The notes beneath the pieces are model-generated. The model worked only from the letters and a program-made list of their open reading frames with translations, ran no database searches and was not told the origin of the DNA. Below, one piece after another: positions 12,673 to 47,840 of a stretch of DNA of 64,000 bases (position 1 is the stretch's first letter; each line of letters begins with the position of its first letter). Source of the DNA: Monocercomonoides exilis PA203. Lineage: Eukaryota > Protista > Preaxostyla. Both the position numbers and the translations under genes were made by a program. The stretch is from positions 868,001-932,000 of the forward strand of contig LSRY02000016.1 in NCBI GenBank assembly GCA_001643675.2, given 5' to 3'.

Positions 12673-12700
<28 letters not shown>
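12673..12700. repeat. (AT)14 microsatellite
   Basis: Read directly from the sequence. Confidence 0.9.
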
Positions 12701-31869: not shown

Positions 31870-34800
31870 CTCTCAAATGATTTCACATTCAACACATCCA
31901 TCCATACGAATCATTCATTCTTTTTTCTCCTCTTCATGCAAAATTTCTATCGATACCTCCTTCTTCTTTTCCTCCATCAAATTCTCATTCCTCAATATTC
32001 GCTTCTCTGCCTTCTCAAATCTGCGTCATGTTTCAATTCTCCTTTTGATCTGCGAATTCACAAAATGAGCAGTTCAGAACACTCACTTCTTCTTTTGTTT
32101 CTTCTATCCTCATCTCACTCTCATTCCCACAAACAGAGTTATTCTCATAATTCACTTCCTTCATCTCCATTTCAACCTTCACTCCAACACAAATCAAACC
32201 ACATTCACTCATCACATCCCAAACTCCAATCTCACTCATCGAAACCTTTCCCTCTTTGGTGAACGAGAGAAGTGGTGCTGTGGTGTGAATCCCATCAAAT
32301 GTTGTTTCTGTCATCTTCAGCTCTCCACTCTCCACACACACAATCCTGCTCTTCATCACTTGCCCTTTCCCACATGAGCTGAACAAACACTCCGAAATCT
32401 CCAATCTCCCATCCTTCTCTTTCACAATGTTTTCCCCATCCCACCCAAACATCTCCCCAAACACAAATCCACATCTCTCCACAACACACTCATCAACAAA
32501 CACTGTCACACTTCCTCCATTCATTTCATCATCTTCAATCATTGTGTTCAAATGAATGGTTGCCTGCACTCTCTTCAATGATTTCACATTCAAATCTCCA
32601 ATCTCACACACTCCCCCAATCAGACATTCTTCTTCAATCCATTGCATATTCAAAAAATTATTTTCAATGTGTTGAATATCACAATTAATGCTCTGGCATG
32701 GTTTATTCTGTGCTCTGCACTGCCTGCTATCACTTCAATTCAGAGATACGAATTCCTGTTCCGAATAAATGAATGTGATCAATAGATTTGGTCAGCATCA
32801 ACATTTTCCTTCCGATTTCCAAACAAATCGAGTTGTTCGACGTCAAAGTATCCTGGCTGAAGTCCAGAACAAGCAGCGTCTCGTTCGCAAATTAATCATT
32901 AGAAAAACACTTGATAAGCACATCCTTGCCAACATAAACTTCATTCATCACAAATCACATGCTTTCCAGTCTCACCCCAAGAGCTGGTATTTTCGTTTCA
33001 ACCGATTCGTCTTTCGGATCAACTGCATCAATCATCACCACTCCTCCTCTCCCATCCACTGTCGAGCACATGCACATCACAAGCGAGCATCCTCTCATTT
33101 TCAATTCTGATTCCCCACTCTTCAGACACATCTTCACCCCTCCACCTTCTTTGCTCCTCTCGCTCACACACTTTGTCAGCACACACCCTTCCATCACGCA
33201 CTCCACACAAACCCCAAACGAATCCACACTCACAACACATGTACCATTCTCTCCACTCAAAATGTTTGTGAATGTCGACTCATGCAATCTCGCAACTGAA
33301 CGTGTGTTTCTTTCTTCTCTTTTCTTGAATTGGATATTATGAGATCCAACAGTCAGCGAAGTCAATATTTCACCTGACATTGTTTTGTTCAATATCGACA
33401 CATTCACCACTGAAATCACTTCCACTTCTACTCCAATCTCCATAATCACTTTCACCACAATCAACTCAGAAAGTGTGAAATCCTCAATTGCAAGACTTCC
33501 TGCATCCACTCTTTCAACACAAAACTTCATCTCTCTTGTCACTTCCTCATTCACTCCCATCTACTCTCCATCGAATAACACTATTTTGCCTGAAATTATC
33601 ACACCAAATGATGATCATGTTATTTCCTTGTTTATTGACGAAGATGAGACAATTTCAATTTCATTCACAGTGCTGCTCATTCTTGAGTTCGCACAATAAT
33701 CAACTGTCAAACACCTGAATCCATCAAATCCACAATGGTTGTGATCCATCCCATTTCTTCCACTCCCATCAACAGTCACCTTTGTTCCCATTGTGCACAA
33801 ATACACAAACAGTGGAATCATTCCATTTTCATCCCCATTTTTACTCCCACTCAGTTTCAACAAATCTGATGGAATTTCATTTGTGTCAAAAAATGAAAAT
33901 GAATTGGTATTCACTTTTGACTCCAAAAACAAACCACTCCCATTACTCACAAACACATCCTTCCCATATGATACCACATTTTCATTCACCTTCGAAAACT
34001 TCACATTTTGCCCAATTGTCAATACACATACCCCACTCACAATCAACACAAACATCCCTCCTCCTCTCCCTCCATTTCCTCCATTATTCTCTGCCTTATT
34101 CCCATTAATCACACTCGACACATTCACAACCACTTTCCCACTTTCGTGCAAAAAAACATAAAATTTTGACCATTCCAATTCTCATGCACACATTGCTCTA
34201 TTGTTGTGTTGCTCGCCACACATATCTCCTCTCCTTCGCACTCTTTGCCACAATCGTCCCATTTCCTCCTGTCAGATTCAAATTCCGAATTGTAACATTT
34301 GACTGAAAACTCTTATCTGATTCAGCTTCTCCTGATGATGGTTCAGAGAACGGAGGCTGGCTCATTTTCATGTTTTCAATCTCCACATCAATCGTCTTCA
34401 ACTGCCTCAGTGCCACTTCAAACACAGATGAAGAGATTCCACTCCCTCCTGATGTCGAAGAGTCGATCACCACATCCTCCACTGAAAGAGTCCCTATCCC
34501 CACAGACACCACAAACACACTCGGCGATGAGCTTCTTGCCGCGTTGTGGTCGATCCCCACATTCCCCACCTCCAGTTGATCAGAAAAAACGCGAAACAGC
34601 GTTGTCGATGAAGAAGAAAGAGAATTCGTCCCAATCACACTCACTGTCTTCCCTCTCCCAGTTATTATTATCTTCTTATCCCTGACATTGATCGTCACCT
34701 CTTCGCTCACATGCCTCCCACCCAGCACTGTGATTGTCCAGCTCAGCTGTACCATGCTCGACGCCACTGCATGTCCCACTGTCTTGAAATGTGATGACTC

Positions 34801-36100
34801 ACTAATCCCACACAGTTTGTTTGTATCTTCCACACTCACTCCAACATATCGATCATTTGCCTCCTTCTTCATCCAATCTTTCATTTCTATGGACAGAAAT
34901 GCCCAACTATTTGACTGCATCTTTGCAAAATATTTTCTTTTGAAATAAGAATATGTTGAATAGAATTCATGAAACGGATTGTTTGACATTTTCAAATGAT
35001 AAAGATTTTTGTTTTGCAAAAAATCATGCAATTGTGGAATATAATCAGTGCATTTGCGATCAAAGAAGATAAAAAATTAATAATTAATGATTGTTGCTTG
35101 GAGCTGTTGATTTTTCCAGATGCAATCAAAATCCTCCTATCTCTTGAAGCGCGAACATGAAATGCAATGAATGCATCATATTCGAAATTGTTCAATAACA
35201 AATTGACAAAGAATTCCTCCACCACATTTATCCATGAGAAAGCATTAAGTGAAAAAAGGAGTTCAACACACACGTACTCTCTCCTTCTCCATTTTCTTCC
35301 TCTTGCGTCCTTGCTCCAATGCTTTGAGAGAAACAAGAAACAGTCCTCCTCCATGATTGAATGCTTTGCATGCTTGGAATTCTCATCCGCTGATTTGGAC
35401 ACATTAAATAACAAAATAAGCACACATGCTCCAGCATTAATTTGAGCATTTCATGAATTTTGAATATTATTCAAAATCTCAACTGATTTGATTGAATAAT
35501 ACATGAATGTCTTCCTGGTTAATGTGCGTTGTAGTTTTTGAATCAACAATTTTGAAAAAAAAAAGTTCTCCACTTTTCAAAATACTCGTTCAGAGTGTCC
35601 CTCTGCCAGATATCCCATCTGAAAATGAAATGTCTGTTCCTTTTGTCTTTGATGAATTCCTTTCACACCAAGGAAATGTGTTTATTCCTTTGATTGTTTC
35701 AATTTGCATTAAAAGGAATTTTTGTTTCTTCAGTTCCATTGATTTCAACATTAAACATTCTCTTGCAATCAATAAAAGACTAATTCGAGATTATGAAGGA
35801 AATCTGAGTCCCGTTGAAATGAACAATAGATCCATCAAAAGCATCGCAAACCAAAGAAAACAAGAAGCCATCCATCAAAGTGGAGCTTTCCGAATAAGAT
35901 GCTGTGAAAGACACTAAAAGCGAAGGGGAAACAAAAACGTTGTAAAAGATCGATTTCGAAAGAGAAACACTCTTCATGAAAGGAGATGGCAATTATTGAA
36001 TCGAAAAGAGTATTGTCCAAAAAAATGAAAAGAACAAACTGCTATCCAACAAAGACGTGATGAAAGTTCTTTTATTGGCTTTCATGCATAAAGAGAATGA
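31870..36100 (-). pseudogene. decayed large Cys-rich surface-protein gene (same broad family as 9559-12559 and 61513-64000)
   Basis: Collinear minus-strand fragments (35992-35780, 35772-35590, 35423-34992, 35031-34198, 34178-33615, 33560-32955, 32653-32033) in shifting frames with stops. Family motifs LCGISESSHFKTVGHAV, HCGFDGFRCLTVDYC, GRGGGMFV and IPLFVYL are present. The ends are approximate. Confidence 0.7.
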
Positions 36101-36464
36101 ATAAAAGAATATTTAGTTTTTGAAGTTTTGAGAGATGCATTAACCAATATTGAACAACGACCATTTTAATCCAATAGCAAAGCCTCGCCTTCCATAATAA
36201 TACATCGCCCATTCATCAAAATTAAACTCTCTTCTCAACAAATATAAAGGCAATTCTTCTATTAGAGACTATCGCAGATTCTCTCCACATTACTGTTGAA
36301 TTCTATAAAATCATGCAAACCTTTATCCCACTTTCTCCAGATGTACTTCTTTTTTGTTCGCATTTCCTTGCTTTACTGTAAATACGTTTTTCCTCCTCAA
36401 TTCCTTCGTTGCATCCATTTCAATGTGATGTACTCATTGACCTTTTTTCTTTTCTTTTCTTTTC

Positions 36465-36497
<33 letters not shown>

Positions 36498-36516
36498 GGA
36501 AAAATATATATATATA

Positions 36517-37497
36517 GGGTCATAATTTTATTAGTACCCCGTTTTTTATTAGATCCTAAATTTTTTTTTCTCATATTGCTTTATATAGAAGCTTATACGC
36601 AATGAGAATAAATTTAAAATAAATAATATATTATTATAAGGTTGTATACAAAATATTTTTGAAAATCATTTCTTTTAAAAAAAGATCTGAATTTTTTTAG
36701 TTTTATTTTTTGATCAATGTTTTGCTCGTGTTTCCACGAGTTTTTGAAACCAAGCATTTTCCTTGTTAGCATTGTTTTTAAACTTTTCTTTTTAACATTT
36801 TTGGTTATTTTATAACTATAGAAACTCTTTTTTTTCACTAGTTTTCACACCTCACCTTTTTTTCGTAAAACTGAAATATAAACAAAGAGAATATTATTTA
36901 CACCTTTTTCTTATGTTCAAATAATGTATTATTTAGTATCATATCATATAATTAAGCTATAATATATGAATATTTGTGAATGACGAGTTTAACACGAAAA
37001 ACAAAATATCGTCTTTTTCATTTTGTGTGCCAAATGTTTTTTGTAAAATATTTTTTCCATATCACATATTTGTAACAAACAATAATACATTATTTGAACA
37101 TAAGAAAAAGGTGTAAATAATATTCTCTTTGTTTATATTTCAGTTTTACGAAAAAAAGGTGAGGTGTGAAAACTAGTGAAAAAAAAGAGTTTCTATAGTT
37201 ATAAAATAACCAAAAATGTTAAAAAGAAAAGTTTAAAAACAATGCTAACAAGGAAAATGCTTGGTTTCAAAAACTCGTGGAAACACGAGCAAAACATTGA
37301 TCAAAAAATAAAACTAAAAAAATTCAGATCTTTTTTTAAAAGAAATGATTTTCAAAAATATTTTGTATACAACCTTATAATAATATATTATTTATTTTAA
37401 ATTTATTCTCATTGCGTATAAGCTTCTATATAAAGCAATATGAGAAAAAAAAATTTAGGATCTAATAAAAAACGGGGTACTAATAAAATTATGACCC
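36517..37497. mobile_element. foldback / long-TIR non-autonomous DNA transposon FB1 (981 bp)
   Basis: Arms 36517-36933 and 37081-37497 (417 bp) appear to be exact reverse complements; the ORF track shows identical 74-aa ORFs on opposite strands. Spacer is 147 bp. Termini are GGGTCAT...ATGACCC, flanked by (TA)6 and (TA)5. Confidence 0.85.
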
Positions 37498-37507
37498 TAT
37501 ATATATA

Positions 37508-38526
37508 GGGTGATTTATAAACCCGGACTTTTTTTAAAATTCATATTTCTCGACGAGTTTAAAAAATTAAATTATAATAATTTACACAATTATGCATTAG
37601 TGTATAACACATATAACTATATACAAATTTTTATAAATTGTATTGTATATTTTTTGAAATAAATAATATTTATTTTTGAAAATCCGACTTTTGATGAATT
37701 TTTCTATTTTAATTAAACGATTCAATTCATCTTTTGCACACATAACCCATTTTTTCCATGATGCAAACAATTCTGGTTATTTTTTATTTTCCACAATTTG
37801 CTCTTTCTTATTGAATGATAATCTGTCATTTTTGAAAAATTTTGTCAATGGGACAACTTAAAAAATTTTTTTCATAAAATGCAGAAACATCGAACAAAAA
37901 CTAACACTTGCATCAATAAATATGATAGTTATATAAAATTACCGCTACATTATAATTAATAATTATTCAGTAGGGATTTCATGAATGTTATCTGTTTTGA
38001 TAATTAATGATATTTTAATGTTCATTTTCATTGAAATTCGAATAAATATTATTTTTTGAAGTCCCTGCTGTATCATTATTAATTATAATGTAGCGGTAAT
38101 TTTATATAACTATCATATTTATTGATGCAAGTGTTAGTTTTTGTTCGATGTTTCTGCATTTTATGAAAAAAATTTTTTAAGTTGTCCCATTGACAAAATT
38201 TTTCAAAAATGACAGATTATCATTCAATAAGAAAGAGCAAATTGTGGAAAATAAAAAATAACCAGAATTGTTTGCATCATGGAAAAAATGGGTTATGTGT
38301 GCAAAAGATGAATTGAATCGTTTAATTAAAATAGAAAAATTCATCAAAAGTCGGATTTTCAAAAATAAATATTATTTATTTCAAAAAATATACAATACAA
38401 TTTATAAAAATTTGTATATAGTTATATGTGTTATACACTAATGCATAATTGTGTAAATTATTATAATTTAATTTTTTAAACTCGTCGAGAAATATGAATT
38501 TTAAAAAAAGTCCGGGTTTATAAATC

Positions 38527-38530
<4 letters not shown>
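37508..38530. mobile_element. foldback / long-TIR non-autonomous DNA transposon FB2 (1023 bp)
   Basis: Arms 37508-37963 and 38075-38530 (456 bp) appear exact; the ORF track shows identical 61-aa ORFs on opposite strands. Symmetry continues imperfectly into the 111-bp spacer. Termini are GGGTGAT...ATCACCC, flanked by (TA)5 and (TA)25. Confidence 0.85.

Positions 38531-38580
<50 letters not shown>
38531..38580. repeat. (TA)25 microsatellite, host tract of the foldback elements
   Basis: Read directly. Further pieces of the tract are at 36505-36516 and 37498-37507. Confidence 0.92.
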
Positions 38581-38856: not shown

Positions 38857-41800
38857 ATGGAAAATGAGCAATTTTCTCTTATAACTGCAATTAGATTTTT
38901 AAATGATATAATTGAAATCGAAGAGAATACACCAGATTTGGCATCATATATGTCAAATAGCACTCAATCATTATTCTCACAAATTGATGTTTGATTTTAT
39001 TTTTTTGTCTTTGTCTGAAGTCTACAAAATTAATCATGATTTTTTCCAACATTTTGGTGAATCACATCAATTACTTAATAGATTCCACAATTTTCACAAA
39101 AATGTTTTGTTGCTTTTCCGAGTATTCTGAGGGATTCACTAAAATGTTAGCTTTTATTCTATTTCTTTTTGACGAATCATTTGCTTATGATCTAAATTTA
39201 TTTAAATGATTGAACATTACGTATATTATAGCATCAAATACGAAAATTGGTATTTTTCCATCTATTAATCGAATTTGGGCGATTTCTGGAAGAAGATTTT
39301 TTCTGTGGAATTATCTTGATGGGTTTGAGATTTTATATGGTTTACTTTGCACTTTTTCAAAATCTTTGTTATTTTAAGGCAAGATTTTTGCCATTATGAT
39401 CATGTTCACAAACCAATTGTGTTGTGTCACCTAGCTGCACCAAAGCAAAATATCTTCACTGATGATATAAAGTATTGCTTTAAATACTTCCATTTTCACA
39501 AAATGATATTTTTTTTTCTTTGAGGTACGTTATGGTTTTGGTAACCGCAGATAACATCAGAATTTTTGGAGTTTCTTTTTCTGATGGAACAATTGATGGA
39601 GCGATCCAGATAGTCGAAAGTGTGAATCTGAATTATTTTCAATAAAACTCTTCAATTTCGAATGATAATTTATTCACACATATTCACATTTAGCTGATCT
39701 TTCTACATCCACAGACGGAGTTTATTTTCGATCAGTTGGATCGTTGCCGAATGGGAGAATATTCTTTGGAGGTGACGACAACTGCGTTCACGAGCTGCTA
39801 TACCGCAAGCAAAAAGGCTGGATCCGCGGGCGCTGCACACTGAAGAACAGAACGCGTCCGCACTGGAAGGATTACCTGCCGCGGCGACCGTCGCTCCCAT
39901 CGTTTCTGTGGGTGGATGCAGAACGAGAAGGAATCGTGCAGCTGGTTGTGGATCCGCTCCGGCACACGCTGGCAACGCTGGGCAGCCGCGGGACAATCAC
40001 TCTGTACGACCTGGGCGTGTCTGCCTCACCAACTGCATCGACATGCCGGAAGGTGTCTGCGATGCCGCTGAAGAAGCAGATTGAGCGGATGAAGAAGATC
40101 CACTCATCGTCTGACCTGCTGTTGGACTCGCTGCCACCACAGGCGCTGCAGCCTGTCTCACTCCACGTCATCAACCGCTCAGAGAGTCAGGTGTGGGCAC
40201 TCGCTGCCGTCACACGCTGCGGCGTAAGGCTGTTCTTCTCGACGCTGTCGTGGTCGGTGAAGAAGATGCAGATGCTTGAGCTCGATGATGGGACAGGTGC
40301 AGATGCAGGTGGATCAACTGAGTCGCTGATGGCGCGGTATCTGATGAAGCAGCGGATGGAAGGGCTGAGCGACACAGGGAGCATGTTCCCGTCGTATGGC
40401 GCACAAGAACAAGACCGAGGAGGAGGAGGAAAAGGGGCAGGTTCTTCGAGTGTGGTGAACATCTCACCGTTCTCGTCGCTTTCGTCGTATTCGCCTGTAC
40501 TGAGGGAGTATCGCCCTGAGAAGCTGAAGCTGATGCATGCACAGCTGCCTCCGGTGAGGGCACTCTCTGAATATTTCTCGCCAAACATTGCTTCTTCAGC
40601 AGCTGCGTCTGGAATGGAATCTGACCAATCTTCTGCTTCTGCTTCTTCATCCGCTTCTTCCTCTTCTGTTCCTCTCTCTTCCACATACGCACCTCCACAG
40701 TCCTCTCCGCTTCGTCCATATCCCTCTTTAGATCCAGCCATCTCATCATCTCCATACAACCCCAATTATCCTTCTTCTTCCCCTCTTTCTTCTGTCTCCT
40801 CTGAGTACGTTGTGCAGAACGAGACTGTCAACTTCAATGATGTGCGGACTGCCTTCATCTCATCCGGCATTTCTCTTATTTCAGACAAGCGATCGCGCGA
40901 TTCTGATGTTCTGTTTGCGCTGACAACAACACCAATGGCCCAGTCAACTGCAGCAGCTGCTGCTCAAAGCTTCCATTCATTTCCCTTTGTATCTCAGCAG
41001 AATTCTTTCGTTTCTTCCTATCCATCTTCATCTTCTGCTTTTCCACTTCCACCACCACAATCACAATCAAATTCCACACTATCATCCACAACTTCCTCAT
41101 TTCAGCCACAAACATTAGGTTTCTATCCATCCCCCTCCGACTACGGGAGCCATCTCACTCTCCCTTTCGTCCCCTTCCGCCCGCAAGACGACCTCGCCAA
41201 GCGCTTTGGCAAGGCCTCCAGCCTTCCCATGCTCTTATCCTCTTCTGGTCTGCTTCTCAATGAGTCAGCCACAGCCATCCACCCCCCATCTCCAGTGCTT
41301 GCCATTGGAGAGGTGCCCTTGTCTGTGTCACTAGCTGCCACATCTGACCCTGCCATCAGCTGGTTCTTGCTGCTGCGCCCGTGGCTGAGTCTGCCGTCGC
41401 CAGGTATGAGCCGCTTGTCCACGCTGCAGCGTCTGCAGAGGGTGTACGAGGAAACAAAAAGGCAGATGAGATTCCGAACAGAAGTTGGAGCAGCCGGTGG
41501 AGCGCAGGGGAGTGTGGATGTGATGTCGATGTTTCCGAAAGCACGTGTTTCGTTCCAGAACGCGTTTTTGGAGGCGAATGGAGGAAGTGGCAGTGGAGGA
41601 ATGGGAATGAATGGAGGAGCAGGAGGAGGAGCAGGAGGAGGAGGAAGGAGGAGAGAAGAGCTGATGATGATGCGCCGACAAGACAACGAGGATGAAATGC
41701 AAGCGTTTGACGAGGTGTTCTTCACCCCTTCGATGTATTCCCTGTCCGCATATCTTCCGTTCTACTCCTCTCCCACCAGCATCGTCCCTCCTTATCTTCT

Positions 41801-44800
41801 TCCCCAAGCCTCTTCAAAGACTGCCCGTGTATCCATCGTGCGGCAGCTGCTGAATGCGTCTTCAGTGACACATCTTGTCTCTCAGATGCCCCACCCACCC
41901 CGAGCAATCGACCATCTCACACAGCACTTGCTTCCCCAGAGGATGCTGTTTGCACTCACTGGGCAAGGAATATGCATCCTTACATGCGCCAGGCCGATGG
42001 ACAATGTTGCTGCTTTGCTCAATCGCATTGCTGATTCACAACAAAAACTGCAGTCGCAATCGCAGGCAGCTGGTCAGATACTTCCTCCACAACAACAACA
42101 ACAGCTGCGTCAACAAGGAATGTTTACGAGACAAGACAATTCGCTTTCTCTTTTGCAATCAACCTCTTCTTCTTCCAATCCGAATTCGAATTCCAATTCC
42201 TTGTCTGTTGACTCACTGCGCAGTGCCACCAACTCGTATGGTCCGTCTGAAGTGTGCCACATGATTCTCCGCTTGCTCTGCTCTCCACAGCCGCTGGCAT
42301 CAACCGCCCCTGCTTCTCTTCCTCCGCCACCTCCTCCACCTCATCTGCTGTCGTTGATGTCAGTACAGGAACAGCTGAATGGAGGAAGTGATGGTTCAGA
42401 CATTGGGGGTGAGGAAAGATATGGCAGAGAAGCGATGGATGAGAGGGAGAGGCAAAGAGAAAGTGAGATGCAGAGGAAGATGATGGGTCAGTCGTCGCAG
42501 TTTGGAACGAGGCATTTTGGCGGCTTGGGGGCGAAGGAGCACAAGAGACGGTCGCTTTTGCTGGCACCTTCTTCATATTCAAACAAGTTTTCATATTCTT
42601 CTTCTTCTTCTTCTCCATTCTCTTCATCATCTTCTTCTTTCTCATCCAAAGACAGACATTCATCATCATTTCACCAAGGAAACTTCAATCAAAGCATTTC
42701 TTCATATTCTTCTTCTTCCTCCTCTCCTTCTTCTTCATTCCCACCTCAATCACTTGCCATCCGCACTGAACCTATCGTCCTCTCCTGCCTCGATCCAATC
42801 GTCTCTTCTTCTCCTTCTTTGACTTCAGCTACTGCCTCCTCCCTCTGCCTCAAGGCATTCATGCTTCTGGGTTCTTCTTTCTCCTCTTCGCTCCTCACCC
42901 TTTTGGATCCTCATTCTCCTCCTCCTCCTCCCCCCGGTGCTCCCTTCACTCCCTCCTCAGCCAATTTCCCTGCTGCTTTGCTTATGCATTCCGTCAGCCC
43001 TGCCTCTCTTCTGTGGAACAATTCGTATGTCGCTGACTTGACTCATTCTGTGATTGCGACGAGGTACTTTTCGGCTGCTCACAACGCGCTGTTTTTGTAT
43101 CTGGCGCGGTCAATTGCACCCCTCTGGAACATGCCATTGATGCTGTTTATGGTGGCACCTTCTTCTTCTTCTTCTGGTTATTCATCTGGAGTTGGAGATG
43201 AGAATAAAAGAAAAAGTGGGGTTAATAGAGAAAGAAATGTGTTTGGTGGATATAATCAAGAAGGAGAAAAAGAACGAGAAGGAAAAAAAGGTGAAGGAGA
43301 TGATGAAGAAGAAGAAGAAAAGAAGAGGAAGCGAAAGGAAGCGAAAGCACAAGAAAGGAAGTGGAACAAAAGAGGAAGTGTGGATGCGATTCTTTCATTG
43401 CTTTCGTGGGGAACAGAACTTGAACAACTGGATTCGACACTGAAGGAGAAAGACATGTTGAACTATCCAAATGTGTTTGGGAATGAGGTGAATGACAAAG
43501 AGGAAGGGAAAATTTTGTCGTTGAGATCGATTTTGAAGAGGAAAAGAGACGAAAATGAGTTGGACGGAGGGTTTGGGGAAGGGGAAGATGAAGATGAAGA
43601 AGGAGAGGAAGGAGAAGGAGAAGGAGAGGAAGATGATTGGGATGATGTGATTGGAGAAGACAGCTGGCTGTGGAAGGATTCAGACGAAGAAGACAACGAA
43701 AACGATGGCGTTGATGGCAATGAATCAAAAGAAAGGAAAGAAAAAGGAATAAATGCCAATGGCAGAAAAGAGAAACGAAAGAGGAAGAATGGCAAAGAGG
43801 AGATGTCTATGTTTTCGACAGGAAGTGAAAAGCGACGCAGAATAAATGAAACTGAATATGAAGCTATTGAGAACGAGGCAAGCAAGAACGAAAGGGCAAA
43901 GCAGAAGGAGCTGCAGGAGCTGGACGAGATCGTTCAGAGCGAAGAGGCGAAGAAAGCGAAGAAAGAGGCAAAAAGGCGGATGAGGTTGCTGAGGCAGCAA
44001 ATGATACGAGAACAGATCCGCACAGCCGACCTGCCGTCTTCCTCGCCCATTGGCTCGCTGCCTCCTGCTTCTCTTGTCTCGTTCCTGCCTCCGTCTTCAC
44101 TTGGATACCAGAATGGATTTGATGGAGGAATCGGAAGAGCAGGAAGAGCAGGAGGAATAAGAGGAAGTGAAAGAGGAGGGAACTTGCCAAACAGCTTGTC
44201 AAATGTGCAGCATTCAGACGATGTCTTCCACAGCTTCCTGGGCATCAGCGGATCAGGTGCTGAATCTTCATCCTTTAACAATTCTTACCCAAGCTCTTCT
44301 TCTTCAAACCCATTTGCCAATTCTCGTTGCTTCTCTTCTTCTTCCTCTTCTTCATTCTCTTCATCTTCTTCTGGTTTGTCTTCCATGTTCTCTATCTCTG
44401 ACGAGTCATCTGCGTCTGTCCCTGTCACGGTCACTCTTCTTGTTGAGCCTGCTCTGTTAGCATCGCTCGCGCAGCCACTTGCTGCTTTGCTGTATTTGAT
44501 ATCAGGACAGAGGAGGTTTGCTTCGTATCTGTTTGCGTGCAATGGAGAGAAAGATGAACAAAATGCGAATTCTTCTTCTTCTTCATCGTCTTCTTCTTCT
44601 TCTTCTTCAGCTTCTTCTTCCTCTTCTTCCTCATATTCAAATTCACATGCATACAACAAACGAAGAAGAAACTGCTTTTCTTCTGCTTTTTCATTCCTTT
44701 CACCGAATTTCATGTCTTCTTCCTCTTCTTTTTATGCTCCCTCAACAACAACATCATCATCATCGTCTTCTTCTTCTTCCTCCTCATCCTCTTCTTCCTC

Positions 44801-47800
44801 TTCCTCTCCTTCTCCAATTTCATACACCTACACCGAGCAAGACTCCCTCTGCGCTTTCTACTCCATCCTCTCCCGCTGCTACGAAGGTATTCTTCTTGTT
44901 CTCCTTCTTTCTGAGCTGAACATCCTAACCACATCTGAATCACCCAAGCAGTTAACTCTTTCTCTTCCTGTCTCTTGCCTCAGGCACCCTTCAAGCATGC
45001 CTTTCCACACACACACATCGCTTGCTTATCCTCTCCCGGCTGCCACTCTGTTTTCTCCCACACCTTCTTCTTCTTCCTCTTCCTCTTCCTCTTCTTCTTC
45101 TTCCTCTTCCTCTTTTTATAGCAGACTGAATGTGAATGCTTATTATCTCACTTTTCGAGATCTTATTGCAACATCAGCAGGAGCAGCAGTTGCACAGTCG
45201 CTGATCATATCTTCACTCATGCGTGTCTTCCAAGCTCCTCAAGGCAATTCAAGCTTCAATTCTTCTTTGTCTTCTTCCTCTTCTTCCTCTTCTTTCTCTT
45301 CCTTCTCTTCTGATGATCACGACAGCACCCCACTTGAGACAGCAGATACGCTGAGCACCTCCTTCACTCGCTTCTGCCCATCCTTCTTCCCACCAGGCGA
45401 TGTGAAGCTCTGCCACACCCTCTCTTTCCTTCAGATGGTTGCACAGGGCCAGCTGAGGGAGAGCGAGCAAAGAAGAGAGAAAGAGCAGAACATGCTGAAA
45501 TGGAATGCGAATGGTGATGTGTTCTGCAAACAGAACGGAACACAGCAGGAAGAGGAGATAACACTACAGGACGCAGAAGCTGCTGTTCAGATGGTTGCCA
45601 GCCAATTCCAATCGAAAGAGCAACAAATGCAACAATTACAACAAGGCAAACAAGAACAAAGCAAACATAACAGTCAGCAACATCATCAGAATGATTCATT
45701 GAATTCTTCATTTGATGCACAAAGCGCTGAGCCGTTGTTCCGCCGACGTGCTCCTGCCAGTGGAAGATTTCTGGTCTCTTCTCGCAACACAAACGATGCT
45801 CCAAAACGCGTCTTCTTTGACGAGCCAGCAACTGAAGAAGGAGAAGAATCAACAACAAAGGCATCATCTTTCTCCTCCTCCTCATCATCTTCATCTTCAT
45901 CTGCTACCAATTCTTTTTCTTCTTCTTCTGGTTATCAATCCACACAAAGCTCTGATCTCCTCCTGTTACTCCCATCCCACAAGCCTGACATGTACACAAG
46001 CAGCAGGAAGTTCCCAATGGATGCTGTAGAGCGCTTTGTGAAGCAGTCTTCTCCTCAGATGTTTATAAACAGACAAGCCAGAGCGATTCTGCTGGCAGCG
46101 TGTGTGCATCTCCTGCGTGAGTGTGCCCGCTCTGTCTCTCTCTCATTCTTCTGCCCTCTCTTCTGTGCGCTTTCTTTTCCCACAGCTTGCATTCCGCTGG
46201 TTGATGCGAAGATCAAACTGGCTGATCCGAATGAGCTGGCTCTGAAATGGCACAAGAACAAGTGCCCTTCATCGGATGTGGCGGGGGCTGAGGCATTCAG
46301 AAGAGTGAGGGATCTGCACTGGTGGGTGACATATGGCATGGAGTCCGCGCTGTCGCACAAGGAAGCGATGCAGGAGAGGCAGATCGAGATGGAGAGAGGG
46401 AAGGCGAAGATGAAGACTATGACGATGATGGCTGGGAGGGGAATGCAAAATAGAAGTGATACTGAGATTGGCTCAAACACATTGCAACAACAGCAGCTGC
46501 AACAGCAAGCAGCTTCGGCTTCAGCTTTGTCCAGCCAGATCCAGTCATCCGCCGAGCTTTTGAAATCCACCGACATTTTCCAGCATCTTCTGAAGCGGGA
46601 CGACCAGCTGATGCATCTTTCTGTGTACCGCTGGGCTGCCTCGCGTGGCTTCCTCCGCTCTGTCCTTGTCGGCTTGGACTCTCCTTTCATTGTGGAGTTC
46701 CTGTGCTCTGCCGACTGCGGCGACCAGGACGCGCTGTGGGAGCACTATCTGAGGAGAGGAGAGTCTGAAAAGGCGGCGGCGGAGCTGATGCGGCTGGCGG
46801 CAGACAGCAAAACGCGGCTGAACAGCGACTCGATGGCACATTTGTCGCAGGCATCGGGCTCTGTTTTGGCAGCAAAGGACGAATTTGCATCGACTGGAAA
46901 TAATCTTCTGGCACTGCGTGTGAAGTACATCACACTTGCAGCTGGCTGTCTTTCTGCTGCTTCAAACACGTCCATCTCAAAATTGCAGGACTTGAGGGCG
47001 CGTGTGAGTGTGGCGCATCTGCAGCAGACTCTGCGGCAGGAAGTCGAAGAAGAGCTGCGAGCAATGGCAGACACCCAACAACACACAGCATTGGAGCCAT
47101 TGCTCACCACAGCACTGACAAAACTCGACTCCCAGTTGTACGACTCAACCGAGCTCTTCACACAGTTTGCGGTTCCTCTATCGCTGTGCTGCTCTGTTTT
47201 GCTGCTTATGCAGAACGCTGGGCAGCTCAGCCAGGAGCTGATACAGGCGACGTGGGACGCTGTCCTTGAGAAGGAGATCAGCAGAGCACCTTCATTGATG
47301 CATGTGGCACCAAATGTGTCGGCAAGGATCATTCAGATCGGGTCGATCCTGTCGGCAAACGCATCATCGCTTTCTTCAGCTTCTTCAGGACAGTCGCTTT
47401 CGGCTGCTTCGGGATTTGCTCCTTCTCCTTCTCCTTCTCCTGCTACTTCTGCTGCTGCATTCACTTCATCCTCTTCTTCCTCTTCATCATCATCATCTGC
47501 TTCTTCTTCCTCTTCCTCTTCACTCCCGTCTGTTCTATTCCCTGTGTTCCATTTGCTCGACCGTCTTGAGCGCATCTCTCTGCGCCTGTCTCAACAAGGC
47601 GTTGCTCTTCTGTCTGCCACCTGGGCAGCTGATGCACTGATCAGAACAGGAGTAACCAAAGAGGAGGTTTTGCTGTCACTTCGCAATCTGCTTGCAAATG
47701 GCGATGCAGCGCTGAAGGAGCTGCAGGGTGTGAGGGAGCCTGCGGGCTCGCTGGCATTCTGGGGGCAGCCGATTCCGCGCAAGCATCTGCTGAGTCTTGT

Positions 47801-47840
47801 GGCACTGCTCTCGGAAGAGAATGTTCCACAGGCTCTTTAG
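38857..47840 (+). CDS. NUP155: nucleoporin Nup155/Nup170 with large low-complexity insertions (~2873 aa)
   Basis: Exons 38857-38988, 39082-39145, 39232-39322, 39379-39471, 39525-39619 and 39694-47840 join in frame. Motifs: GIFPSINRIWAI...FLWNY, NGRIFFGG...ELLY...GWI..RC, LAAVTRCGVRLFF, RYFSAAHNALFLYLARSIAPLW, DQLMHLSVYRW, SPFIVEFL, ELFTQFAVP. Confidence 0.88.

Follow-up and report, generated by a model that had tools for sequence, protein, structure and literature searches.

Two foldback elements in one TA microsatellite of Monocercomonoides exilis as probable passengers of pogo-type transposons

Duplication of a TA dinucleotide is the hallmark of the Tc1/mariner-pogo group of DNA transposons. 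The Foldback (FB) elements of Drosophila are characterized by very long inverted arms around a short loop, mostly without coding capacity and with the potential to form hairpins or cruciforms; their arms are made up of tandem subrepeats and their insertion is accompanied by a 9-bp duplication. In Arabidopsis, the proteins of the pogo-like transposon Lemi1 bind sites on the Emigrant MITE (PMC1636448). Sleeping Beauty, for which TA is an obligate target, displays a mild preference for ATATATAT and for bendable AT-rich DNA (PMC8934666).

The assembly of the oxymonad Monocercomonoides exilis PA203 (82,301,135 bases in 101 contigs) was obtained by Oxford Nanopore sequencing of unamplified ligation libraries and polished with Nanopolish and Pilon, the short-read polishing of repeats being imperfect (PMC8767320). 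Repeats were classed in bulk, with 3.72 Mb of DNA transposons and 28.9 Mb (35%) of unclassified repeats, and the assembly paper contains no family-level description of transposons and mentions neither pogo elements nor MITEs nor inverted repeats (PMC8767320). The locus described here lies in a window of 64,000 nucleotides (C10:868001-932000) and contains two long foldback elements, A and B, stacked in a single TA microsatellite. Both are very probably non-autonomous DNA transposons of the cut-and-paste type, belonging to the Tc1/mariner-pogo group, i.e. 1-kb hairpin passengers inserted independently at TA dinucleotides. In the literature searched, the A and B families appear to be without prior description for M. 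exilis. The kind itself is known: an undescribed system had been proposed for this locus in a first-pass annotation, and what is found is a pogo transposon with its passengers, of the kind documented for Lemi1/Emigrant (PMC1636448).

The tract at the locus reads (TA)6, element A, (TA)5, element B and (TA)25. The left part of the host microsatellite, (TA)6, occupies positions 36505-36516 of the window and ends with the left target-site copy of A (TA at 36515-36516). Element A (36517-37497; 981 bp), a non-autonomous foldback with termini of the pogo-A type (GGGTCAT...ATGACCC), is composed of a left arm of 417 nt on the forward strand (36517-36933), a loop of 147 nt (36934-37080) and a right arm of 417 nt on the reverse strand (37081-37497), which is an inverted copy of the left arm and 100% complementary to it. 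The (TA)5 that separates A from B (37498-37507) supplies A with its right TA and B with its left TA. Element B (37508-38530; 1,023 bp), a non-autonomous foldback with termini of the pogo-B type (GGGTGAT...ATCACCC), has a left arm of 474 nt on the forward strand (37508-37981), a loop of 75 nt (37982-38056) and a right arm of 474 nt on the reverse strand (38057-38530), the arms being 99% complementary (99.2% identity). The right part of the microsatellite, (TA)25, follows at 38531-38580, starting with the TA that forms the right target-site copy of B. This layout, with its coordinates, its GGGT(C/G)AT ends and the arm and loop lengths of A, agrees with the first-pass annotation, which had assigned to B a 456-bp arm and a 111-bp spacer in place of the 474 nt and 75 nt measured at 99%; the 456-nt arm is probably the mismatch-free part of the 474-nt arm. 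The left flank (35032-36444) is a diverged multi-copy sequence, and the right flank of the locus is unique.

Apart from A and B, the 64-kb window contains no long inverted repeats. As had been claimed, they differ internally: beyond the tips, the similarity between the two is not significant (local alignment score of 34, against 28 +/- 3.4 for shuffled sequences), and in view of this lack of significant likeness between the arms inside the tips, A and B are not considered to share an origin. Neither element contains an open reading frame (ORF) longer than 74 aa, and the ORFs present are mirror images across the arms, in keeping with the earlier view that credible coding capacity is lacking. 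Folding predictions give a near-perfect hairpin in both cases, with -473 kcal/mol (z = -60) for A as single-stranded DNA and -721 kcal/mol for B as RNA. No internal tandem arrays were detected in the arms of A or B with Tandem Repeats Finder.

Both elements belong to dispersed multi-copy families. All copy counts are lower bounds in which only the best candidates were scored, and most copies were judged from coordinates and from matched strings of 26 nt. For the A arm, 258 first-look candidates in the genome led to 40 scored matches with 88-100% identity, nearly all of them paired at the same spacing, and A is present at no fewer than 27 loci elsewhere (88-99% identity). The B arm has at least 79 matches elsewhere, with 74-86% identity and nearly all between 79 and 86%. 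Searched with exact 20-nt tip patterns, the genome shows 42 ends of the A type and 85 of the B type, i.e. 127 in total, and with up to three mismatches these numbers rise to 63 and 118. With their dispersed copies and a longest ORF of 74 aa, A and B are thus two distinct non-coding families of mobile elements, as the annotation had it.

Partner elements that encode a transposase were found for each family. The pogo population of the genome is very large: a search with the DDE_1 profile (PF03184) returned 732 first-look candidates, of which 150 were scored, all above the cut-off. The 30 best DDE_1 loci (L041-L070) are other pogo families, such as the one at L047 with TACCATCGG... ends, and GGGT...ACCC ends are absent from these 30 loci. 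Only genome-wide tip searches revealed the partners of A and B, in the form of paired ends that lie about 2.0 kb from each other with DDE_1 matches in between. For pogo-B, at least 13 copies have such end pairs around PF03184 matches (for example C25:501824-503852, C28:908782-910814, C9:775041-777095, C24:138429-140483, C26:895165-897223 and C31:992577-994633). For pogo-A, at least four copies have both A-type ends, three of them around a DDE_1 match (C2:1021032-1023059, C32:760521-762549 and C1:953051-955085); the pair of A-type tips at C32:353984-356008 encloses no DDE_1 match among the 150 scored, and three further DDE_1 matches, on C36, C35 and C34, are accompanied by one A-type end. Several pogo copies contain stop-free open frames of about 400-450 aa. 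The detailed comparison of partners is based on one copy per lineage, namely L071 for pogo-B (element at 227-2251 of the locus; ORF of 401 aa; DDE_1 match at 3.5e-15) and L072 for pogo-A (element at 441-2453; ORF of 396 aa; DDE_1 match at 4.8e-15), whose transposases are 44% identical. The 79-aa ORF upstream of the DDE ORF of pogo-B has no match in Pfam. An autonomous partner with the same ends had been anticipated for this locus, and one lineage of about 2.0 kb with a DDE_1 match has been found for A and another for B.

The resemblance between passengers and partners is confined to the tips. The left tip of A (36517-36566, forward strand; mirror copy at 37448-37497) comprises about 50 nt common to A and the 2-kb pogo-A element by alignment and blastn, with 83-86% identity over 50-53 nt in blastn. 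The left tip of B (37508-37541, forward strand; mirror copy at 38497-38530), which carries GGGTGATTTATAAACCCGGACTTTTTT, comprises about 30-35 nt common to B and the 2-kb pogo-B element by the same two approaches (94% over 34 nt in blastn). Further inside, no similarity was detected in blastn comparisons of A with L072 and of B with L071. The A tip contains the terminal GGGTCATAWTTTTATTAG and two ATTAG(T/A)(A/T)CC motifs, presumed to be transposase-binding sites. A repeated subterminal motif is thus common to each pair, ATTAG(T/A)(A/T)CC in A and pogo-A and AACCCGRACTTTTT in B and pogo-B, the latter occurring twice at one end of pogo-B.

TA flanks all 127 A-type and B-type ends, and the next six nucleotides are variable. 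The clearest view of insertion comes from a sister family with the same blueprint, represented at locus L027 by a GGGTCAG...CTGACCC element located in a B-like copy, within its right arm. The left arm of that copy is intact and preserves the uninterrupted sequence, in which a single TA is present, ...AAATTTGTATA-TA-GTTAGATGTG... (...GTATA-TA-GTTAG...), and in the interrupted arm the same TA is found on both sides of the insert. One TA has become two, and therefore the boundaries of the element are GGG...CCC and the duplication is TA. The target of this sister family, which has the same tips, is TA and is duplicated on insertion; this empty-site evidence stems from L027. For a copy of A in locus L012, the reconstructed uninterrupted host palindrome had no match with three or fewer mismatches. 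For A and B, target preference amounts to a TA dinucleotide and nothing more, as is usual in the Tc1/mariner-pogo group. Tips shared with a resident DDE_1 (PF03184) element, TA at every end with its duplication visible in the sister family, and dispersal on many contigs in dozens of copies without a transposase of their own together characterize A and B as passengers.

The symmetry of the arms has a history of its own. Both arms were aligned in eight copies of A and eleven copies of B, and the substitutions private to one copy were counted. These are found in both arms rather than in one arm in a ratio of 42:10 for the A copies and 134:22 for the B copies, counts that may be too high if the sample missed close relatives of these copies; most of the 22 one-arm changes in B stem from two decayed copies, the arms of which are 94-95% alike. 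Changes that are symmetric require one arm to have been copied onto its counterpart, whether in the resident copy itself or in the lineage from which it derives. The subfamilies of A have loops of either 147 nt or 255-259 nt at a constant total length of 979-985 bp, and the boundary of the palindrome shifts between them, with arms of 417 versus 362 nt. The inner 56 nt are palindromic only in the subfamily to which the A of the window belongs and are homologous to one side only of the other subfamily, with a modest signal (39 of 57 positions). The loop of A is alike at 142 of 147 positions to the loops of the copies on C34 and at C10:326620. The possibility of using loop flipping to test for arm recombination was discarded: with symmetric arms the orientation is arbitrary, and the loop inversion apparent between copies is uninformative.

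Several other explanations of these structures have to be weighed. It is unlikely that the flawless arms result purely from very recent insertions, with no arm-to-arm copying. A recent burst would explain the arms of A well enough, given its relative at 99% identity and a subfamily that is 97-99% alike; the arms of B, however, show 99.2% identity although its nearest relative in the assembly reaches only 87%, and its ten private substitutions all occur in both arms (10:0), a pattern seen in 9 of the 11 B copies. The boundary shift at constant length between the A subfamilies also speaks against recency alone. Given arm copying, perfect arms do not date an insertion. A is probably young because it has a relative at 99% identity, while the age of B is not readable from its arms. 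The earlier statement that flawless arms imply recent activity or homogenization therefore holds for homogenization, on account of the symmetric private substitutions, and fails for youth deduced from the arms alone. An assembly or library artefact, with palindromes created by foldback chimeric reads or by amplification, is scarcely conceivable. Perfect palindromes are indeed known from amplified libraries and from some long-read chemistries, but here structures of 1 kb with the same loops recur dozens of times across many contigs, and every locus has TA ends and unique flanks of its own. The published assembly derives from unamplified ligation libraries with a read N50 of 8.9 kb (PMC8767320), which, together with the recurrence of both structures at many loci with unique flanks, makes an amplification artefact unlikely. 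As A and B are dispersed multi-copy families, they are not products of assembly, and the decayed copies with arms 94-95% alike indicate that the assembly does not force the arms into symmetry. Finally, the locus could serve the host, as a hairpin whose read-through would give rise to double-stranded RNA and small RNAs acting as a brake on pogo or as regulators of neighbouring genes. Stems longer than 400 bp are possible in both elements and the genome contains at least four genes with a Piwi domain; even so, a host function is very improbable, for only 30-50 nt per arm match pogo and none of them lies in the transposase ORF, so that silencing of pogo would hardly be possible, and dozens of similar copies exist elsewhere.

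The presence of two families in one tract raises the separate question of how the site was chosen. The first-pass annotation had interpreted it as target-site preference and had predicted flanks consisting mostly of TA tracts for copies elsewhere. A microsatellite-targeting system, with a transposase that recognises (TA)n tracts in the manner of Micron, TAFT or MuTAnT in plants, would account for two unrelated families in the same tract, which is improbable under a uniform choice of TA (by a rough estimate, with about 3.3 million TA sites, two insertions in one 34-unit tract have a probability of less than 1% genome-wide), and some Tc1/mariner transposases favour ATATATAT (PMC8934666). The census of ends makes such a system most improbable all the same. 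Among the 127 ends, TATATA is found upstream only at the four ends of the A/B locus, the only ones that lie in a TA tract. Elsewhere, TATA precedes the TA at 0 of 40 A-type and 1 of 83 B-type ends, i.e. 1 of 123 in total, against 0.82 expected from a background of 0.67% of TA dinucleotides (sampled in the window outside the A/B locus and in 30 other loci). This is the chance rate, and the prediction of flanks that are mostly TA tracts is therefore refuted. Copies of MuTAnT are mostly flanked by TA repeats (PMC4486113), unlike those of the A and B types, and the defining feature of microsatellite-targeting transposons, namely that most insertions have (TA)n flanks, is not seen in these families. 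Moreover, a (TA)13 at 12674-12699 of the window is unoccupied. One stacked locus alone does not demonstrate a target preference. The improbability of two insertions in one tract under uniform choice nevertheless implies some local bias, and other observations point to regional clustering rather than to recognition of the tract. A B-type locus is located within 10 kb of 8 of the 27 A loci, versus 0.77 expected (P about 6e-7, or about 6e-6 without one segmental duplicate), and a second pair of A-type and B-type elements exists on C2, 50 bp apart and with no TA tract between them. Nesting or abutment of elements, at L017, L027 and L071, points the same way. Regional clustering may not be the whole of the local bias. 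Closely packed TA sites in bendable DNA may make a slight contribution to targeting, by analogy with the mild ATATATAT preference of Sleeping Beauty, a tract effect of which nothing was measurable in the census of 127 ends. It is also conceivable, if improbable, that pogo transposases choose their targets partly by DNA structure or by resident ends, favouring a TA near DNA prone to form hairpins or cruciforms, such DNA being that of other foldback elements and of long (TA)n tracts. Hints in this direction come from the tract with its two families, the 50-bp pair and the 10-kb clustering, and also from a fragment of A that abuts another GGGTGAT end (L017), a pogo-B copy located 17 nt from another GGGTGAT end (L071) and the nested insertion in the B-like arm at L027. 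If this were true, such targeting would build stacked arrays, and each move would restore the 1-kb palindromes through hairpin-templated repair.

The reading of A and B as independently inserted pogo passengers suggests the following course of events. A microsatellite of about 34 TA units would have pre-existed in an intergenic stretch, and A and B would have inserted into it independently, each at one TA. From the tips held in common, it can be inferred that the pogo-A and pogo-B transposases bind and mobilize A and B in trans: they would bind the tips of the passengers, excise them and paste them into a TA, which would thereby be duplicated. The TA tract would have offered many ordinary targets close together, within a region in which elements of this kind accumulate. 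The arms have been kept alike because one was copied onto its counterpart, either in the resident copy or in the source lineage, a process for which gene conversion or hairpin-templated repair would be the mechanism.

These results classify part of the large unclassified share of repeats in the M. exilis genome. With two parallel pogo/passenger pairs and several open transposase frames, this amitochondriate genome may still be subject to change by DNA transposition. The lesson from the arms is that in these elements identical arms are not equivalent to recent insertion, and the two families are a possible natural system for understanding how long palindromes stay symmetrical.

The very long inverted arms, the short loop, the absence of coding capacity and the hairpin or cruciform potential of A and B are shared with the FB elements of Drosophila. 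A Drosophila-type Foldback was nevertheless discarded as a classification: unlike in FB, the arms of A and B contain no tandem repeats, the duplication is TA and the tips match those of pogo elements. Nor are A and B MITEs in the strict sense, which are usually shorter than about 800 bp and have short terminal repeats, versus total lengths of 981 and 1,023 bp and arms of 417 and 474 nt here. They work like MITEs and are better named foldback-type passengers.

With Sleeping Beauty and other Tc1/mariner elements, A and B have the TA target in common, and a TA tract would be acceptable to Sleeping Beauty or slightly favoured by it (PMC8934666). Unlike Sleeping Beauty, they are not of the IR/DR type, the transposase of their partners belongs to the pogo (DDE_1) branch and they display no measurable preference for tracts. 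The stacking in (TA)n recalls Micron in rice, TAFT in maize, MuTAnT in Medicago (PMC4486113) and the arrays of guayule and rice (PMC5907723), a likeness limited to one locus. Most copies of those microsatellite targeters lie in TA repeats, whereas the A and B types are flanked by a tract at this locus only; in addition, MuTAnT (PMC4486113) is Mutator-like and A and B are of the pogo type. The closest described system is that of Lemi1 and Emigrant, in which, as here, a pogo-type transposon is accompanied by a non-coding passenger and only the terminal inverted repeat and subterminal motifs are common to the two (PMC1636448). The TA target and the many dispersed copies are further likenesses (PMC1636448), and the tips of A and B combine a terminal repeat with a repeated subterminal motif, as do the Emigrant sites bound by Lemi1, so that similar binding may be supposed here (PMC1636448). 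In contrast to Emigrant, a short MITE with short terminal repeats, A and B are about 1 kb long and almost wholly palindromic, with arms of 417-474 nt that undergo arm copying. A further difference from Lemi1/Emigrant is the existence of two parallel pogo/passenger pairs, in an oxymonad protist.

Family A, the non-autonomous foldback elements with GGGTCAT...ATGACCC tips, divides into two subfamilies that match in total length (979-985 bp), as seen when the copy in the window is compared with those of L018 and L020, two loci from elsewhere in the same genome. Subfamily 1 has arms of 417 nt around a loop of 147 nt, and subfamily 2 has arms of 362 nt around a loop of 255-259 nt. The inner 56 nt (window 36878-36933 and 37081-37136) are palindromic only in the subfamily with 417-nt arms, and the sequence reads as though an inverted copy of one side had replaced the sequence on the opposite side.

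In the window, a (TTTTC)10.6 tract that passes into a T-run (36443-36497) ends 7 bp from the (TA)6 repeat, which makes the host site a compound of simple repeats. The sequence to the left of the TA tract (35032-36444) matches at least 40 further places, out of 195 candidates, at 66-71% similarity. It probably represents either a degenerate copy from a large family of paralogues or an old repeat. Along this flank runs a chain of broken minus-strand ORFs (32955-35423), in which no Pfam match was found. To the right, a plus-strand open frame of 2,698 aa (39744-47840) carries two nucleoporin domains, a Nup133-like N domain at residues 2-179 and a C domain at residues 2116-2539, with no Pfam match across the ∼1,900 residues between them.

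Ends of GGGT-tip elements often lie 0-50 nt from another such end (L071:210-226; L017 near 2370; L019:1887-1930). In L071, 17 nt separate the end of a pogo-B copy from a GGGTGATTATTTTTG end, and in L017 a GGGTGATTATTTTTG-type end is directly adjoined by an A fragment; on contig C2, an A copy and a B-type copy are 50 bp apart. Such close spacing could mean that elements insert near ends already present, or that they have simply piled up. The A copy at L012:1480-2500 (G000:C27:471519-472501) is surrounded, beyond its flanking TAs, by an additional inverted repeat of ∼21 nt (AAAATCCGGACTTTTTGTG) similar to the subterminal motif of the B-type families; a genome search for the host palindrome without insertion found none. 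On G000:C91, where 13 of the 119 listed B-type loci are found, the same pair of A and B copies, 8.2 kb from each other, is present twice (∼1,145-1,162 kb and 1,380-1,389 kb), 227 kb apart, apparently through a segmental duplication.

The genome contains at least four genes with open frames for a Piwi domain (Argonaute-type) (G000:C28:121800-122711, G000:C47:1987965-1988648, G000:C47:1302294-1303028 and G000:C8:157110-157766), which makes it conceivable that hairpin transcripts could enter an RNA-interference route.

The first-look search for DDE_1 transposase domains gave 732 candidates in the genome, and each of the 150 that were scored passed the cut-off. A 2.3-kb element at L047:636-2967 (G000:C13) belongs to a separate pogo family, with perfect terminal repeats of 46 nt beginning TACCATCGGTGGAAAA and a repeated motif GGTGGAAAA(T)(G/C)CGGTA. 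This shows that the genome harbours more than one pogo lineage at a time, several in all, which differ in their tips.
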